In this document: one piece after another, positions 69-5,843 of the stretch | Layout of the letters: each line of letters opens with the position of its first letter | Numbering within the stretch: position 1 is the stretch's first letter | DNA from: Octopus sinensis | Lineage: Eukaryota | Assembly (NCBI RefSeq): GCF_006345805.1 | Contig: NW_021829733.1 | Span: 1 to 5,881 of the forward strand | Direction: 5' to 3' | DNA length: 5,881 nt | The notes under the pieces: model-generated | Told to the model about the DNA's origin: nothing | The model's input: only the letters and a program-made list of their open reading frames with translations | The model's database searches: none | Program-made: the position numbers and the translations under genes

Positions 69-132
69 TACGTACGTACATACATACATACATACATACA
101 TACATACATACATACATACATACATACATACA
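69..132. repeat. (TACA)n microsatellite, 14 units at 77-132, preceded by two TACG variant units
   Basis: Read directly from the sequence; abuts the 5'-truncated end of retrotransposon copy 1 at 133. Confidence 0.98.
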
Positions 133-497
133 GCGGATGTTAGCATAAAGCTGAAGATCAGTGAAAAAGAGAACACCTACGACACCTGCGCTGAACTATT
201 GAGAAATCTGCAGTTACTGTATCCAGATTACAAGTTCAGTTTAATACCTGTAATTATTGGAGCCCTGGGATATGTAACACTGCCTAAATACCAATCTTGA
301 GAAATTAGGCTTCTCAAAACCAGAGAGGAGAAAGCTGATTTGAAAACTACAGATCAAATCACAGGAACTGTAAAAATCTGCAAAACTTTCCAGAAGTTTA
401 TCATTTAAATATATGTGAGCATGTCTAGATATGCAACAATATGCCTGAGAATACATACAAAAAACATACAAAACTGCACATACATACATACGTACGT

Positions 498-536
<39 letters not shown>

Positions 537-694
537 CATACACACATACATACATACATACATACATACATACATACATACATACAAAAATACCCTGTTG
601 TTGATGTTGAAACTCCAGTGAAGGAACCTTGGATCTAGGTTAGAAATAAGTTCTTTCTCTATTGGCAAGAAATCTTGAAATAAACTGAATAATG
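133..694 (+). mobile_element. R4/Dong-clade (RLE-type) non-LTR retrotransposon, copy 1: 5'-truncated, with the C-terminal RLE end and the complete 3' UTR
   Basis: Frame 133-300 reads ADVSIKLKISEKENTYDTCAELLRNLQLLYPDYKFSLIPVIIGALGYVT. After frameshifts it continues CLNTNLEKLGFSKPERRKLI*KLQI/ITGTVKICKTFQKFII*, with the stop at 406-408. The K-x-x-x-Y..L..L and P(V/I)IIGALG motifs match the end of the RLE domain of R4/Dong-type elements. 279-592 is homologous to 2187-2412. An in-frame 9-nt tandem duplication lies at 173-190. The 3' end runs into (ACAT)n at 695. Confidence 0.85.
479..586. repeat. Compound (CATA)n/(CA)n microsatellite inside the 3' UTR of retrotransposon copy 1
   Basis: Read directly; the homologous position in copy 2 holds only about 3 CATA units followed by the same CAAAAATA. 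Confidence 0.95.
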
Positions 695-787
695 ACATAC
701 ATACATATATACATACATACATACATACATACATACATACATACATACATACATGCATACATACATACATACATAGATTCATACATA
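695..787. repeat. (ACAT)n microsatellite at the 3' junction of copy 1
   Basis: Near-perfect tract 695-775 with a short degenerate extension. Confidence 0.97.
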
Positions 788-788
788 G

Positions 789-987
789 CACGCCGTCGGT
801 TACGACGACGAGGGTTCCAGTTGATCTGATCAACGGAATGGCCTGGTCGTGAAATTAATATGCACGTGGCTGAGCGCTCCACCGACACGTGTACACTTAT
901 CTCAGTTCTCAGGCAGATTCAACATGACAAAGAGTATGACAAGGCTGACCCTTTGAAATACATACGGCACTAATTTTTACCAGCTGA
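789..987 (-). mobile_element. Probable 5'-truncated SINE (3' half) of a cephalopod-type family, embedded in the TACA tract
   Basis: Non-repetitive, GC-richer 200-bp block with TACA repeats on both sides. It resembles, from recall, the reverse complement of the body and tail of an abundant octopus tRNA-derived SINE. No pol III boxes are present in this fragment, so the family call cannot be verified here. Confidence 0.55.
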
Positions 988-1060
988 TACATACATACAT
1001 ACATACATACATACATACATACATACATACATACATACATACATACATACATACATACAT
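988..1060. repeat. Perfect (TACA)n microsatellite, about 18 units
   Basis: Read directly; abuts the 5'-truncated end of retrotransposon copy 2 at 1061. Confidence 0.98.
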
Positions 1061-2412
1061 GTTAAGGAAGTCTGAAGGATGTCTAACTGGTTAGCAAGGA
1101 AACAGAAATACCAAAATTACACAGTTTCTTTGCGGGTGGCTTGAAACTTTTATGCAAAGAATTTGCACGAGATGAAAAAGAGCTTTGACCTGGTTACAAC
1201 GTTCTCGAAGGATGTTGGGTTGGAGTTTGGTCAGATTAAATGTTGTTATATGATTGTTGAAAGGGAGAAAACTATAAACCAGACTAGCAGCATCTTCATC
1301 AATGTCTTGACTGTTTCCCCTATAACTGATGAGAAATGTTCTAGGTGTCTCGGTGTGGATGAAGACATATCTTACAATGGCACCTATAACAAAACACGTG
1401 TCACTAAGGAATAGTACAGTCGAATAAAGAAAATTTGGGCCTCAGAACTCTTTGCATTCAATAAAATAGTTGTCCACAATGTGCCTTGCAGTGTCAGTAC
1501 TCATACCAACGTTTGGGCTGCTTAATTGGACGCTTGATGAAATCCGAGCCATTAATGTGAAAACCCGGAAAATACTAACATGCACACATAATTTCCACAT
1601 AAACAGTGACGTAGACCGTCTCTGCCTAAAACGAAAACAAGGTGGTAGAGACTTAACATCGATCCAAAATGCCTCTGAATGTCGTATCATATCCCTTCGG
1701 CATCATCTTTTAACCACCAAGTGTCAAAGTGCATCCCTTGGCCAAATTTGCATACTTGAGGCTGATGACATAAGACTTGGAAGGTAATTCCATGAGCAGC
1801 ATTCTTTGTCTAATAACCTTAAATAAATGCCCCAAGACATCGCACGTATCATCAGACGAAAGGATGAGCATCATCAAAGCAATCTATCATGGACGAATAA
1901 CCGGATTACTACATCCCACTTTGAAGGGTATGTGTTTGCAATCCAGGAACAGGAAATAGCAACCAAATATTTTATTCGCAAAATTGATTGAGATGCAGGA
2001 AAAGCAGTAAAATGTGACAACCTATGCAGATTTTGTGGAGTTAACACCAAAGATAGCCATACCATAAGCAGTTGTCCGTAAATGCCATTACGGTATTATC
2101 CACCGATGAGACATGGTGTTGTAGCTAGGACACTATATATTCAAATACCTCGGAAGGATAACCACGAGGACAAAGAAATAAAACAAACTGCCTAAATACC
2201 AGTCTTGAAAAATTAGTCTTCTCAAAACCAGAAATGGGTAAGCTGATTCGAAGGCTTCTCATGCGATCCATTAGTGGAACAATAAAACTCTAAAACTTTC
2301 CAGGAGTTTATCATTAAGTATATATGAGCATGTCTAGATATGCAACTATATGCATGAGAAGACATACATAAAGCAAAACATACAAATCTGCACATACATA
2401 CATACAAAAATA
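1061..2412 (+). mobile_element. R4/Dong-clade non-LTR retrotransposon, copy 2: pseudogenised RT-thumb-CCHC region, internal deletion of the RLE core, partial 3' UTR
   Basis: Conceptual translation across frameshifts and stops gives: HSFFAGGLKL at 1120-1149 (decayed F(V)DD RT motif), FSKDVGLEFGQIKC, CSRCLGV (YKYLG), SRIKKIWASELFAFNK, IPTFGLLNWTLDEI, KTRKIL, H-x-x-SDVDRL-x-LKRKQGGRDL, FEGYVFAIQEQEIATKY (1920 onward), C-X2-C-X7-H-X4-C (2025-2075) and MRHGVVA. At 2187 the sequence jumps to the last about 40 codons, homologous to copy 1 from 279. This motif order is typical of R4/Dong/Rex6-type elements. Confidence 0.92.
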
Positions 2413-2416
2413 TGGA

Positions 2417-2435
2417 CTTTCCGGACAACCCAATA
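2417..2435. mobile_element. Solo mariner terminal inverted repeat remnant ending in TA
   Basis: CTTTCCGGACAACCCAATA is identical (19/19) to 5071-5089, the terminus of the mariner element, and is in the same orientation. Confidence 0.85.
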
Positions 2436-2448
2436 CAAACATACATAC

Positions 2449-2699
2449 TGGAGCACTTGGTTTTTGTAAGTAAATGCCTAACTGTCATTCTGGATAAGCT
2501 TGGATTTTCACAAAAAGGAATGAACCAACTGATTTGCATATTACAAATACAATCTGTAAGCAAAATGGTAAAATTATGCAAGACTTTTCTCAGGTTTAAA
2601 ACGTGACATTGTTTTCGTTATCTACATTCCAAAGATGGAGCTTTGTATCTTTGTTAGAAACCAAGAATTTTTCAAGAAGAATTTCAATCATTAAATACA
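2449..2699 (+). mobile_element. R4/Dong-clade retrotransposon, copy 3 (divergent subfamily): extreme C-terminus and 3' UTR
   Basis: With one frameshift it reads GALG-FVSKCLTVILDKLGFSQKGMNQLICILQIQSVSKMVKLCKTFLRFKT* (stop 2604-2606), aligning with GALGYVT-CLNTNLEKLGFSKPE...VKICKTFQKFII* of copy 1. UTR segment 2626-2662 matches 612-648 at 26/37 nt. It is preceded by ACATACATAC. Confidence 0.8.
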
Positions 2700-2703
2700 G
2701 AGG

Positions 2704-2856
2704 ATCCATCCATCTGTCCATCAATCCATACGAACATATATACATACATACATACATACATACATACATACATACATACATACATACATACATACATACA
2801 TACATGCATACATGCATGCGTACATACATACATACATACATACATACACACATATA
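2704..2856. repeat. Degenerate (TCCA)n followed by a long (TACA)n microsatellite
   Basis: Read directly; main TACA tract about 2741-2850 with TGCA/TGCG variants. Confidence 0.97.
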
Positions 2857-3005
2857 TTTTTGTGTTGAGTATCAGCACTACTTATATTAAGACCTCTCTA
2901 AGGACGGTTGACCACCCCTCCCCTTTCCTCAGCATCTGGTCAACACTTATCTAGCAACAGTATACGAAAAACATAGTACAAAAAAATTAAACAAAAAAAA
3001 AAACA

Positions 3006-3196
3006 GGCGTAGGATGGCTGTGTGGTAAGTAGCTTGCTTGCCAACCACATGGTTCCGGGTTCAGTCCCACTGCGTGGCACTTTGGGCAAGTGTCTTCAAC
3101 TGTAGCCTCGGGCCGACCAAAGCCTTGTGAGTGGATTTAGTAGACGGAAACAGAAAGAAGCCCGTCGTATATATGTATGTATATATATATGTATAT

Positions 3197-3229
<33 letters not shown>

Positions 3230-3483
3230 ATGTATATATATATATATATGTGTATGTGTCTGTGTATGTGTATCTGTATTTGTCCCCCTAACACCGCTTG
3301 ACAACCGATGCTGGTGTGTTTACTTCCTCGTAACTTACCGGTTCGGCAAAGAGACCGATAGAATAAGTACTAGGCTTACAAAGAATAAGTTTTGGGGTCA
3401 ATTTGCTCGACGAAAAAGCGGTGCTCCAGCATGGCCGCAGTCAATTGACTGAAACAAGTAGAAGAGTAAAAGAGTAAAAAAAA
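3006..3483 (+). mobile_element. Full-length tRNA-derived SINE (family A) with an internal microsatellite
   Basis: A-box-like TGGCTGTGTGGT (3015-3026) and B-box GGTTCAGTCCC (3058-3068) at tRNA spacing. CORE-like CACTTTGGGCAAGTGTCTT at 3078-3096. 3' hairpin at 3438-3451 and a short tandem AAGAGTA/A-rich tail. Resembles the common octopus SINE from recall. Confidence 0.85.
3168..3279. repeat. Compound (TA)n/(TG)n microsatellite inside SINE A
   Basis: Read directly. Confidence 0.95.
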
Positions 3484-3771: not shown

Positions 3772-3969
3772 TTGGTACAAGGCCAGCAATTTCGGGCATG
3801 GGGTAAGTGGGTTACGTTGACTACAGTTGTTTTATTTGGTGAGTATTTTTATCGACCCCGAAAGGACGATAGGTAAAGTCTAGCTCGGCGGAATTTGAAC
3901 CTAGAACGTAAATACGGAAGGAATGCAGCTGAGAATAATTTCATCCGACGCGTTAACGATGCAGCCAGC
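3772..3969 (-). mobile_element. tRNA-derived SINE (family B), copy B1, near full length and diverged
   Basis: The minus strand has a B-box GTTCAAATTCC (3890-3900) and an A-box-like TGGCTGCATCGTT near 3954-3967. The body CCTTTCGGGGTCGATAAA and the tail GGCCTTGTACC are shared with B2 and B3. Confidence 0.8.
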
Positions 3970-3970
3970 A

Positions 3971-4051
<81 letters not shown>

Positions 4052-4076
4052 TAATAATAATGATAATAATAATAAT
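3971..4076. repeat. Compound trinucleotide microsatellite (AAT)12(GAT)14(AAT)n, probably the tail of SINE copy B2
   Basis: Read directly; lies at the 3' end (minus strand) of B2. Confidence 0.97.
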
Positions 4077-4200
4077 CCTTTCTGCTCTAGGCACAAGGCC
4101 TGAAATTTGGGGGGGAGGGGGCTAGTCGATTACATCTACCCCAGTATTCAACTGGTACTTATTTTATTGACCTCCGAAAAGATGAAAGGCAAATTTGACC
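4077..4200 (-). mobile_element. SINE family B, copy B2, 5'-truncated (no tRNA head)
   Basis: Homologous to B1 and B3 (GGCACAAGGCCTGAAATTT, GGGGCTAGTCG, GATGAAAGGCAAA); it stops just before the position where the B-box occurs in B1. Confidence 0.8.
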
Positions 4201-4201
4201 C

Positions 4202-4253
4202 ATAATAATGATGTTGATGATGATGTTTTTGTTGATGATGATGATGATGATGA
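4202..4253. repeat. Degenerate (GAT)n microsatellite, probably the tail of SINE copy B3
   Basis: Read directly. Confidence 0.93.
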
Positions 4254-4366
4254 TTCTTTCTACTATTGGCACAGGGTCTGAAATTTACGGAGGGGCTAGT
4301 CGGCTACATCCTCTCCTGTGCTCAACTGAAACTAGTTTATCGACCCTAAAAAGGATGATAGGCAAA
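4254..4366 (-). mobile_element. SINE family B, copy B3, 5'-truncated, abutting the broken end of the mariner
   Basis: Homologous to B2 (CTTTCTACTATTGGCACAGGGTCTGAAATTT ... TTTATCGACCCTAAAAAGGATGATAGGCAAA). Confidence 0.8.
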
Positions 4367-4369
4367 CCC

Positions 4370-5089
4370 CACATCGGGTTTTTTGCCTGGTTCCCAAAGA
4401 AACGTGCGATCTTGCATATCATGTTGGAAAACAACACCCTTCTCTTGAATTGCTGCTTTTAACTCGTCCAGTTGTGTGCAGTATTTCTCAGATTTAATTG
4501 TCTGGTTACTTGAGAGAAGCTCATAGTACAGAATTCCTTTCCAATCCCACCAGACACAAAGCAAGAATTTTTTAGGGTCAAGGCTCGTTTTGGGGGTGGC
4601 TAAGGGTGGCTCATGTCTCTTACTCCAGGATCGCTTTCTTTGAACATTTCGGTAGATAATCCATTTCTCATCACCTGTCACAATTTGCTTTAAAAAAGGC
4701 GCGTTTTCATTCCGTTTGTAAAGCGAATCACAAATGGCAATGCGATCCAAAAGGTTCTTCTCACTCAACTCATGTAGCGATTTGTGTACCCAAGCTTTAC
4801 CAGGTGCTCATGAACGACGGATTTTGATAGGTTGAGGCTTTCTGCCAATTCTCGGGTTGTGCAATGTGGGTTATTCTCAATTACTGACTTGATTTGGTCA
4901 TCATCTGTAGTGGATGGTCTGCCTGATCGCTCTTTATCAATAAGGCTACAATCTCCAGCTCGGAACCTTGCGAACCATGCTCTAAATAGAGGTATAGTCA
5001 AATCCTCTTTTATGGACTCAACCAAGTTCTAAAATAAGTCGAAAGGTAAGCTACTATAAATCGGCACGATCTTTCCGGACAACCCAATA
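4370..5089 (-). mobile_element. Mariner (Mos1/Himar-like, DD34D class) transposon relic with the 5' TIR intact and the 3' end lost
   Basis: The minus strand begins TA-TTGGGTTGTCCGGAAAGATCGTGCCGATTT, a mariner-type TIR at about 5058-5087. It carries transposase motifs WFARFRAGD...RSGRP, HEL (WVP deleted at 4774/4775), IVTGDEKW (4661-4678), KKFLLCVWWDWKGILYYELL and GVVFQHD (4418-4423). The YSPDL motif and third Asp are absent. Confidence 0.95.
4373..4977 (-). pseudogene. Mariner transposase pseudogene (HTH linker and first two catalytic Asp regions), split over track ORFs 4765-5025 and 4346-4768
   Basis: Frameshifting deletion at the WVPHEL motif, a deletion between AAIQEK and GVVFQHD, a frameshift after HD (the shifted frame reads ARSHVSLGTRQK), and the N-terminal about 45 aa are missing. 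Confidence 0.92.
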
Positions 5090-5694
5090 GAAAAAAAAGT
5101 TCCAAACTTTTGGCTACGATTGTAGAGTCAAACTGAGTCTATGCAAAGAGAAACGTTTAACTTTCTAAATAAGCACCTGTGGGTATAGATTAGTGTGTGT
5201 GTGCGCGCGTATGTGTATAGCAATTTTTAATACACCTGTATGCACACATGTCTATTGACGGAAAATACTTTATAAGAATACATCGTATTTTCCAGGATAC
5301 AAATCGAATACTTCACATCAGTATTTTCAGCCAAATAAGGTCGGTCGATTTATACACCAATACAACTTTGGAGGACCGAAAATTCGATGTGGAAAGCGGC
5401 AAGATTTGCAAAGATGGTGATGATGTTCGAATGTTTGTATTACAAGTTTGCACGAAGTTCAGAAGCGATTCAACTTCGATAAGTATTGCGCACGAAAGTA
5501 TAGAAACTTAAGGGATTTCTTTGTAACTTTCTCTTGATTAATATAAAAATAACACGCCTATATAAAGTACATGCTTTTGGATACGTCTACAGATACATAT
5601 ATACATGTGTGAGAATGTGCGTGTGTCTGGCTGCGTAAGAATACAAGTGTATAATCGTATGTACATTTACATATGAACGTATGCTAAATGTCTA

Positions 5695-5746
5695 TTGATT
5701 GATTCTAGTTTCAGCTCACGAGCTGTGGCCATGCTGGGGCACCGCC
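5695..5746 (-). mobile_element. 3'-tail fragment of a SINE related to family A
   Basis: The minus strand reads GGCGGTGCCCCAGCATGGCCACAGCTCGTGAGCTGAAACTAG, aligning to GCGGTGCTCCAGCATGGCCGCAGTCAATTGACTGAAACAAG at 3418-3458. Confidence 0.8.
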
Positions 5747-5843
5747 ATTTGTAGATATATATATTATATTTGTATCTAAACATATATACATATCTAGATG
5801 TATATATCCATGTCTCTCTCACACACCCTTTCTCTGTCGGCCT

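Follow-up and report, generated by a model that had tools for sequence, protein, structure and literature searches.

The question raised by this locus is why fragments of a long interspersed nuclear element (LINE) lie together in one patch of tetranucleotide repeats. The window, as the whole analysed stretch of 5,881 nucleotides from Octopus sinensis (contig NW_021829733.1) is called here, contains three same-strand, 5'-truncated fragments of one LINE lineage with a reverse transcriptase (RT) and a restriction-like endonuclease (RLE), which start flush behind (TACA)n at 133, 1061 and 2449. These starts, the shared strand and the different truncation points had been proposed from the letters of the window without database searches (referred to below as the sequence-only reading), and they were upheld by Tandem Repeats Finder (TRF), tblastn and the inspection of junctions. 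The zone at 69-2856 is probably a single (ACAT)n/(TACA)n microsatellite which was hit at least three separate times by a Dong-like RLE LINE lineage inserting into the repeat, and the lineage very probably inserts specifically into tetranucleotide microsatellites. The copies and their flanking tracts are as follows.

69..132, + strand: (TACA)16 tract, the 5' flank of copy 1 and its target microsatellite (TRF: 16 copies, 98% matches; junction ...TACATACA / GCGGATG).
133..694, + strand: copy 1, a 5'-truncated LINE fragment (tblastn similarity to the C-termini of P0002, P0003 and P0004 begins exactly at 133, E=4e-18).
695..787, + strand: (ACAT)23 tract, a 3' tail or target remnant behind copy 1 (TRF; junction ...AATAATG / ACATACATAC).
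987..1060, + strand: perfect (ATAC)18 tract, the 5' flank of copy 2 (TRF: 100% matches; junction ...ACATACAT / GTTAAGG).
1061..2412, + strand: copy 2, a 5'-truncated LINE fragment (the stitched translation of 1061-2186 matches seven proteins, E=5e-87 to 2e-53).
2440..2448, + strand: short ACAT-type remnant, the 5' flank of copy 3, reading ...CAAACATACATAC with the preceding bases (junction ...CAAACATACATAC / TGGAGCAC).
2449..2733, + strand: copy 3, 5'-truncated, from a diverged subfamily (tblastn match of the P0002 C-terminus at 2445-2597, given also as 2445-2603, E=4e-9).
2734..2854, + strand: (ACAT)30 tract, a 3' tail or target remnant behind copy 3 and the end of the zone (TRF score 200; junction ...CCATACGA / ACATATATACATAC).

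The (TACA/ACAT)n tracts identified by TRF and regular expressions (69-132, 478-586, 695-787, 987-1060, 2392-2406 and 2734-2854) were all located on the + strand, which is the sense strand of the element, and the same two scans detected no run of at least three TGTA units in the window. The tetramer TACA was counted 138 times in the window versus 36 for TGTA. Each copy is truncated at a different point: copy 2 at the YxDD region of the RT, copy 1 just past the RLE core and copy 3 at a GALG motif. The 3' ends of copies 1 and 3 lie flush in (ACAT)n. Independent copies were drawn from contigs that encode homologues, and two of these loci outside the window, L002 and L005, come from octopus.

The coding part of copy 1 (133-405) comprises the C-terminal ~90 codons of the RLE domain with one in-frame stop, and base 133 is where the relatives read 'ADINV..', directly past the endonuclease core. 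Its 3' untranslated region (UTR) is composite: a first part (406-477) is separated by an expanded (ACAT)27 tract (478-586) from the terminal segment (587-694), which ends in ...AATAAACTGAATAATG. Copy 1 is 78% identical to O. bimaculoides P0010, and its closest DNA relative is L005 from O. vulgaris (87-91% identity). In L005, the 3' UTR parts stand in the order of copy 1, with 87% identity over 5164-5444 and 91% over 5470-5577 (equivalent to 587-694); a short degenerate ATAC tract separates the 3' region from the counterpart of 587-694, which also ends in ...AATAAACTGAATAATG. Because L005 shows both parts in order, the 3' UTR of this family is composite and contains an internal ACAT tract, 27 units long in the window. 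The 91% match of 587-694 also confirmed the claim of the sequence-only reading that copy 1 ends flush in (ACAT)n at 694/695. An end at ~490, with 587-694 as a separate insert, was suggested by the point at which copies 1 and 2 stop aligning, CTGCAC(ATAC)n, and was rejected because L005 holds both parts in the same order. The segment was also rejected as a short copy of the copy 3 subfamily, with a 33-nt, 76% match to 2628-2660 (z=4.1). It may still point to the origin of the composite 3' UTR, if a short piece from another subfamily had inserted into the tail and been captured.

In copy 2, homologous codons begin at 1061/1062, the first base past the repeat. The closest named protein is P0005 from Octopus bimaculoides (58% identity), and residues 116-236 and 227-629 of P0003 match the copy in tblastn. 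It spans from just upstream of a degenerate RT YxDD through the thumb and a CCHC knuckle (CRFC..H....C) to an RH(D) motif (given also as RH(G)), where an internal deletion of ~285 nt at 2186/2187 removed the RLE core. Past the deletion there follow the tail of the open reading frame (ORF) and the 3' UTR with its short internal tract of (ACAT)3.8 at 2392-2406, and the copy breaks off at 2412 behind AAAAATA, which is all that is left of the terminal 3' UTR segment. Several stops and frameshifts are present. The sole stretch over which copies 1 and 2 align is 279-491 / 2187-2405 (82% identity).

Copy 3 starts at the GALG motif, carries one frameshift and has an ORF that ends in ...VKLCKTFLRFKT and a stop at 2606. 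Its DNA alignment with copy 1 scored 49 versus a shuffle mean of 20.4 (z=10.4), with ~65% identity. The 3' UTR (2607-2733) shows no relation to that of copy 1 or copy 2, so copy 3 belongs to a distinct subfamily, as had been proposed. Its end had been described as TACA followed by a degenerate TCCA tract and then a TACA tract; the TCCA-like degeneracy and the TACA-type tract behind it were found, but the 3' UTR itself runs via the degenerate TCCA-like tract at 2704-2729 into (ACAT)30. Stops, frameshifts and deletions mark the three window copies as long dead, and no RLE catalytic core is left anywhere in it.

The possibility that one copy was multiplied by segmental duplication or misassembly was considered, as duplication of an element with its flank does occur in the lineage: copy c at locus L011 is 99.2% identical to copy b. 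However, each window copy spans another part of the element, with truncation points and lesions of its own, and identity in their overlaps is just 82% (copies 1 and 2) and ~65% (copies 1 and 3). Such sequence differences already refute this explanation, to which we attach practically no credence.

The association between the element and the repeat was then traced in the loci outside the window. Among the readable junctions, 10 of 11 at the 5' side and all at the 3' side abutted the family's own tetranucleotide on the sense strand, and tracts of the family unit were found on the sense strand only at every locus. The O. vulgaris copy at L005 is truncated at another point, its flanks are unrelated, and it starts directly behind ...CCATACATACATAC (in fuller form ...CCATCCATACATACATAC). 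The full-length copy at L012 is preceded by ~95 TACA units and followed by (CATA)26, and L003 has its 3' end in ~705 ACAT units. Other families abut a different unit. L001 contains a full-length copy between (CTTA)18 upstream and (CTTA)75 downstream, and L004 a 5'-truncated copy with at least 12 CTTA units upstream and a short ACTT tract downstream. In L011, copies are separated by ~1 kb of CTTA, with L011b framed by CTTA on both sides and the 3' end of L011a in ACTT. At L014, two full-length copies begin at the identical base behind (CTTA)n, and L014a and L014b are framed by CTTA on both sides and on the same strand. The 3' ends at L008 and L006 lie in short ACTT tracts. Copy c of L011 was not counted as an independent insertion, since it arose by segmental duplication of copy b and its flank (99.2% identity): positions 7640-9570 and 11360-13300 represent a ~3.7-kb tandem duplication that includes a full-length element's 3' part and composite CTTA/CCTA/TACT/CA tail.

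Background tracts of at least three ACAT units occupied 12 of 20,419 octopus bases away from elements (~0.06%). With the window counted as one locus, two of the three octopus loci lie at ACAT tracts, far above this base rate. The loci outside the window support the claims of the sequence-only reading that the preference is older than one burst and, through L005, L012, L003 and the ACTT sister families, that an RLE-type LINE lineage inserts into (TACA)n in a fixed orientation.

Several side observations concern these tracts. In O. vulgaris and in the window, (CCAT)n or TCCA-like tracts grade directly into ACAT tracts (L005 5068-5147, window 2704-2729), and CCAT/TCCA and ACAT tetranucleotides may interconvert or co-associate with repeats in octopus. 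The (ACTT)n tract of L001, together with its full-length element, is bracketed by inverted copies of AAAATGAACATGAGGG (~4081-4097 and ~8588-8604), and this target microsatellite might be part of a foldback or of some other repeat. The L004 contig ends in (ATAC)13 at 5081-5132, which places both tetranucleotide tracts within 5 kb in that host. L013, L014 and L015 represent one locus in three samples; L013 is 99.5% identical to the others up to the (CTTA)n tract and diverges from 8227, past which L014 and L015 carry a further full-length copy that is missing from L013. Either a presence/absence polymorphism or a difference between assemblies may lie behind this, as the right flank of L014 was beyond the compared range in this comparison of empty and filled sites. 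The metagenome scan gave one locus, with no readable junction, and scans of viral and prokaryotic genomes gave none.

Repeats at both ends of a copy could also arise without any real target preference, if the ACAT tracts were the element's own 3' tails, as in RTE and CR1, later expanded by slippage. In a related version, the upstream tracts would be tails of older copies, and homing into earlier tails or tandem build-up would replace the recognition of free-standing microsatellites. Every copy does end in the repeat on the sense strand, the 3' UTR of the copy 1 family even has an internal ACAT tract, and head-to-tail arrays are present in the window, L011 and L014. However, in the full-length copies L012, L001 and L014a no element 3' UTR can be recognised ahead of the long upstream arrays, nothing resembling a 3' UTR precedes the first tract of the window, and the upstream tract of L005 is mostly (CCAT)20, which is not the tail of its family. 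No same-family 3' UTR similarity was found before the upstream arrays of L012, L001 and L014, in a search of low power: sister families already differ in their 3' UTRs (L011a versus L011b), and an upstream tail donor of another family could escape recognition. Homing into tails would in any case still be sequence-directed insertion into (ACAT)n and would differ in degree, not in kind. Both versions together form the main rival explanation, which is considered unlikely.

The repeat unit also follows the element family. The unit is ACAT in the octopus copies and in the clade of L003 and L012, and ACTT, which differs in one base of four, in the sister families (L001, L004, L011 and L014). As the sister families use ACTT instead of ACAT, the repeat unit appears as a heritable property of each family. 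L012 (ACAT) and L011 (ACTT) come from the same sample, ERZ25073825. In a neighbour-joining tree of the region from RT to CCHC, the L003 and L012 clade and the clade of the window and L002 each received 100% bootstrap support, and the octopus clade was placed with weak support among ACTT-type and unassigned families. The tree is rough and unrooted with an unsettled deep order, so that an ancestral ACAT unit and an ACAT unit arisen twice both fit.

This match bears on the explanation that the elements accumulated passively in a microsatellite-rich, insertion-tolerant or low-recombination patch, with an incidental link to TACA. Such an explanation has been cited for Drosophila Waldo-A/B near CA repeats in PMC3812793. 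The zone does contain two unrelated pieces, listed here.

788..986, strand not assigned: 199-nt insert within the microsatellite zone, not a LINE copy (compared with the copies, the remaining window, L002 and L005, with no significant similarity).
2413..2439, strand not assigned: fragment resembling a mariner end, which splits the zone between copies 2 and 3 (2417-2439 is 96% identical to 5071-5093).

The remainder of the window is also dense in remnants of mariner and of sequences resembling short interspersed nuclear elements (SINEs). However, passive accumulation leaves unexplained the flush junctions at both ends and the strict strand bias, as well as the occurrence of the same pattern in O. 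vulgaris and unrelated hosts. The chief objection is that the flanking unit switches between ACAT and ACTT with the family in one sample; as it changes with the element inside one genome, a regional or passive explanation fails. Passive accumulation is largely refuted in this way and is regarded as very improbable.

A number of observations weigh against specific insertion into the repeat. The two unrelated pieces show that the zone tolerates other insertions, and three insertions in one zone are not fully independent evidence of a preference. At L002 (O. bimaculoides), the 5' end does not adjoin an ACAT tract and the 3' end is missing, the 3' end of L005 is followed only by a degenerate ACTGACATATAT, and L007, L009 and L010 provided no readable junction. 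L014a (5455-8045) is 3'-truncated near residue 784 of ~1165 and still abuts (CTTA)n directly, which simple target-primed reverse transcription does not predict; this truncation may be a microsatellite-mediated deletion. The octopus sample outside the window consists of two loci. Despite these points, specific insertion into tetranucleotide microsatellites was retained at the strength stated above.

The type of the element was established mostly through its relatives. Pfam and PDB searches with the window fragments alone gave no match because these fragments lie outside the RVT_1 core, and since the endonuclease catalytic core is missing from the window, the RLE assignment rests on close homologues such as P0010. 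What survives in the window is the CCHC and RH motif of copy 2 and the post-catalytic RLE C-terminus of copies 1 and 3. The relatives P0003 and P0006 match Pfam RVT_1 (2.5e-16), and downstream of the RT P0002, P0003, P0004 and P0008 possess a CCHC knuckle (CRLC..H....C), RHD and KPD-x14-E; P0010 carries RPD-x14-E. These patterns agree with the restriction-like endonuclease motif K/R-P-D-x12-14-D/E, reportedly described by Yang, Malik and Eickbush in 1999. A weak VRR_NUC match was obtained at the KPD..E site of the relatives. In the PDB sequence search, the RT and C-terminal region, including the CCHC/RH segment, matched R2 proteins only (9nl3, 9dou, 9nl2 and 8gh6), and the L1 ORF2p with its apurinic/apyrimidinic endonuclease (APE) was absent among the matches. 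Full-length relatives (L001, P0014 and P0020) have a single conceptual ORF of ~1165 aa. The 550-aa N-terminal ORF of the full-length L001 showed no Pfam domain and hence no APE (Exo_endo_phos) domain. Together with the R2-only matches, nothing here pointed to a grouping of the RT with APE-type LINEs. With RT, CCHC and RLE motifs present and APE absent, the lineage is classified from its sequence features as an RLE-bearing (R2-group) non-LTR retrotransposon. The R4/Dong-type label fits this architecture and the published abundance of Dong-R4 in octopus, and the HERO clade is a possible alternative placement.

The N-terminus of the full-length relatives contains no zinc finger of CCHH or CCHC pattern. 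It carries a conserved module of ~70 aa (SYRRNRDYS..W.YELN..Y.CY...GYMKRMK..WD..HPE), predicted to form a three-helix bundle (AlphaFold2 pLDDT 75). The best Foldseek match of the module in PDB had E=2 and was not significant, and profile searches against PDB and Pfam gave nothing relevant. A diverged N-terminal Myb/SANT-like domain has been reported for R4/Dong (PMC7998251). ACAT-type (P0020) and ACTT-type relatives resemble each other closely in their N-terminal modules.

The proposed mechanism follows R2 and Dong by analogy. The element protein would nick the repeat on its bottom strand, (ATGT)n, the freed 3' end would be paired by the (ACAU)n tail in which the element RNA terminates, and target-primed reverse transcription would start at the paired end. 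Priming in the repeat would fix the orientation, with ACAT always on the sense strand. An early stop of synthesis would produce the varied 5' truncations, and the end of the cDNA would be rejoined within the repeat, which would leave the same repeat on the same strand at both flanks. Since each new copy would bring a fresh ACAT tail, head-to-tail pile-ups such as those in the window, L011 and L014 would follow. The sequence-only reading had spoken of cleavage of (TACA)n; sequence-specific cleavage by the protein and pairing of an (ACAU)n RNA tail with a nicked repeat would be indistinguishable here, and either protein or RNA could set the specificity.

A more far-reaching reading is offered tentatively, namely that a widespread and undescribed Dong-like RLE branch has its target set largely by the pairing of its own RNA tail with the nicked repeat. 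It would explain how sister families with near-identical N-terminal modules use different repeats in one genome. The similarity of these modules and the one-base difference between the units leave room for such tail-guided targeting but do not prove it. If targeting were tail-guided, a one-base change of the tail from ACAT to ACTT would retarget a whole family, a consequence that is conceivable though doubtful at present.

Insertion into microsatellites as such is not new among LINEs. PMC3812793 and PMC4640811 list Dong in (TAA)n, Waldo in (ACAY)n, Mino in (AC)n, Kibi in (TC)n, Koshi in (TTC)n, Togen in (TG)n and some HERO elements. Dong (R4 clade; Bombyx mori, Anopheles gambiae, Biomphalaria glabrata and Darwinula stevensoni) resembles the octopus lineage in its single long ORF, the order RT, CCHC, RLE, and the lack of N-terminal zinc fingers. 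It also inserts in a fixed orientation into a microsatellite identical to its own 3' tail and is frequently 5'-truncated. Insertion into rDNA or a microsatellite is a feature of the R4/Dong clade, and the junction table and the tract maps show the microsatellite form of it here. In contrast to Dong with its (TAA)n unit, the lineage uses the tetranucleotides ACAT and ACTT, with no (TAA)n tract at any of the junctions examined, and its putative link to R4/Dong is drawn from sequence features.

Waldo (WaldoAg1/2 and WaldoFs1; R1 clade) inserts sequence-specifically into (ACAY)n, essentially the same target repeat (PMC3812793, which cites Kojima & Fujiwara 2003), and ACAY targeting is recorded only for this APE-bearing R1-clade element. 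Waldo possesses an N-terminal APE endonuclease, whereas the octopus lineage has a C-terminal RLE and matches R2-type proteins only; the shared target, if real, arose by convergence.

R2 is the best-understood model, in which the RLE nicks the bottom strand and target-primed reverse transcription follows. The RT, CCHC and RH(D/N) motifs of R2 (28S rDNA; structures 8gh6, 9nl3 and 9dou) align with those of the octopus lineage. R2 has N-terminal zinc fingers plus Myb and a unique 28S site, whereas the octopus lineage has a different conserved N-terminal module and uses simple repeats. The microsatellite-specific HERO families (Repbase Reports 2014, cited in PMC4640811) are RLE-bearing too; the accessible text does not state their target units. 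Togen, near NeSL, is likewise an RLE-bearing LINE reported to target a microsatellite, (TG)n.

Dong-R4 LINEs are reported to be abundant in octopus genomes and to have been active there recently. Five families with recent activity are described for O. vulgaris, and O. bimaculoides has a full-length consensus; the papers concerned do not discuss an insertion preference (PMC13282606, PMC8967140 and PMC9115989). They form the dominant RLE LINE class annotated in octopus (PMC13282606). In the literature searched, which did not extend to Repbase Reports and Dfam, no description of an ACAT- or ACTT-specific RLE (R4/Dong) element was found, and a prior description of these families in either resource is quite possible.

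The sequence-only reading had made no mention of the loss of the RLE core and the 3' end from copy 2, of the absence of any RLE core from the window, or of the pieces at 788-986 and 2413-2439. The insert at 788-986 is bordered by ACAT tracts on both sides and contains an imperfect inverted repeat (~805-850). It was rejected as a SINE or LINE piece, as it resembled none of the sequences compared and had no match in Rfam and tRNA searches, and may represent a passenger of non-autonomous type or else an insertion with no relation to the LINE. The sequence at 5071-5093 adjoins a mariner-type transposase remnant at 4346-5025 on the - strand (Pfam Transposase_1, 1.4e-24; HTH_32), and its orphan 23-nt counterpart at 2417-2439 sits at the point where the 3' UTR of copy 2 breaks off. 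A fourth LINE copy at 1-68, resembling the 3' end of copy 3, was rejected with an alignment score of 21 versus a shuffle mean of 15.8 and maximum of 24. Rfam matches to 'mir-297', 'mir-1277' and similar entries on the ACAT tracts (55-130, 475-543, 702-770, 984-1056 and 2754-2857, - strand) were far under the gathering scores and were dismissed as microsatellite artefacts. Elsewhere in the window, SINE-like repeats occupy 3005-3460, 3780-4366 and 5705-5750. SINE-like pieces flank a TG/TA microsatellite at 3167-3283 and have an inverted partner at 5705-5750, and each of two tandem units of ~170 nt (4023-4193 and 4202-4366, 72%) has (AAT)n/(GAT)n at its head.

R2 and other site-specific RLE retrotransposons are under development as tools for DNA insertion at chosen sites, and the choice of target by these elements is an open mechanistic question. 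The ACAT and ACTT families are closely related, occur in one genome and have similar N-terminal modules, with targets one base per four apart, and they offer a natural experiment on whether specificity is encoded in the protein or in the RNA tail. If Repbase or Dfam already list the families with their targets, the novelty left would be the comparison of the ACAT and ACTT families, not their discovery. The main value of the finding lies in the use of this pair for studying target choice and target change in RLE retrotransposons. For cephalopod genomics, such insertion would account for some of the association of tetranucleotide microsatellites with repeated sequence at their flanks, and it would imply that the Dong-R4 LINE class, for which abundance and recent activity in octopus have been reported, is directed away from genes.

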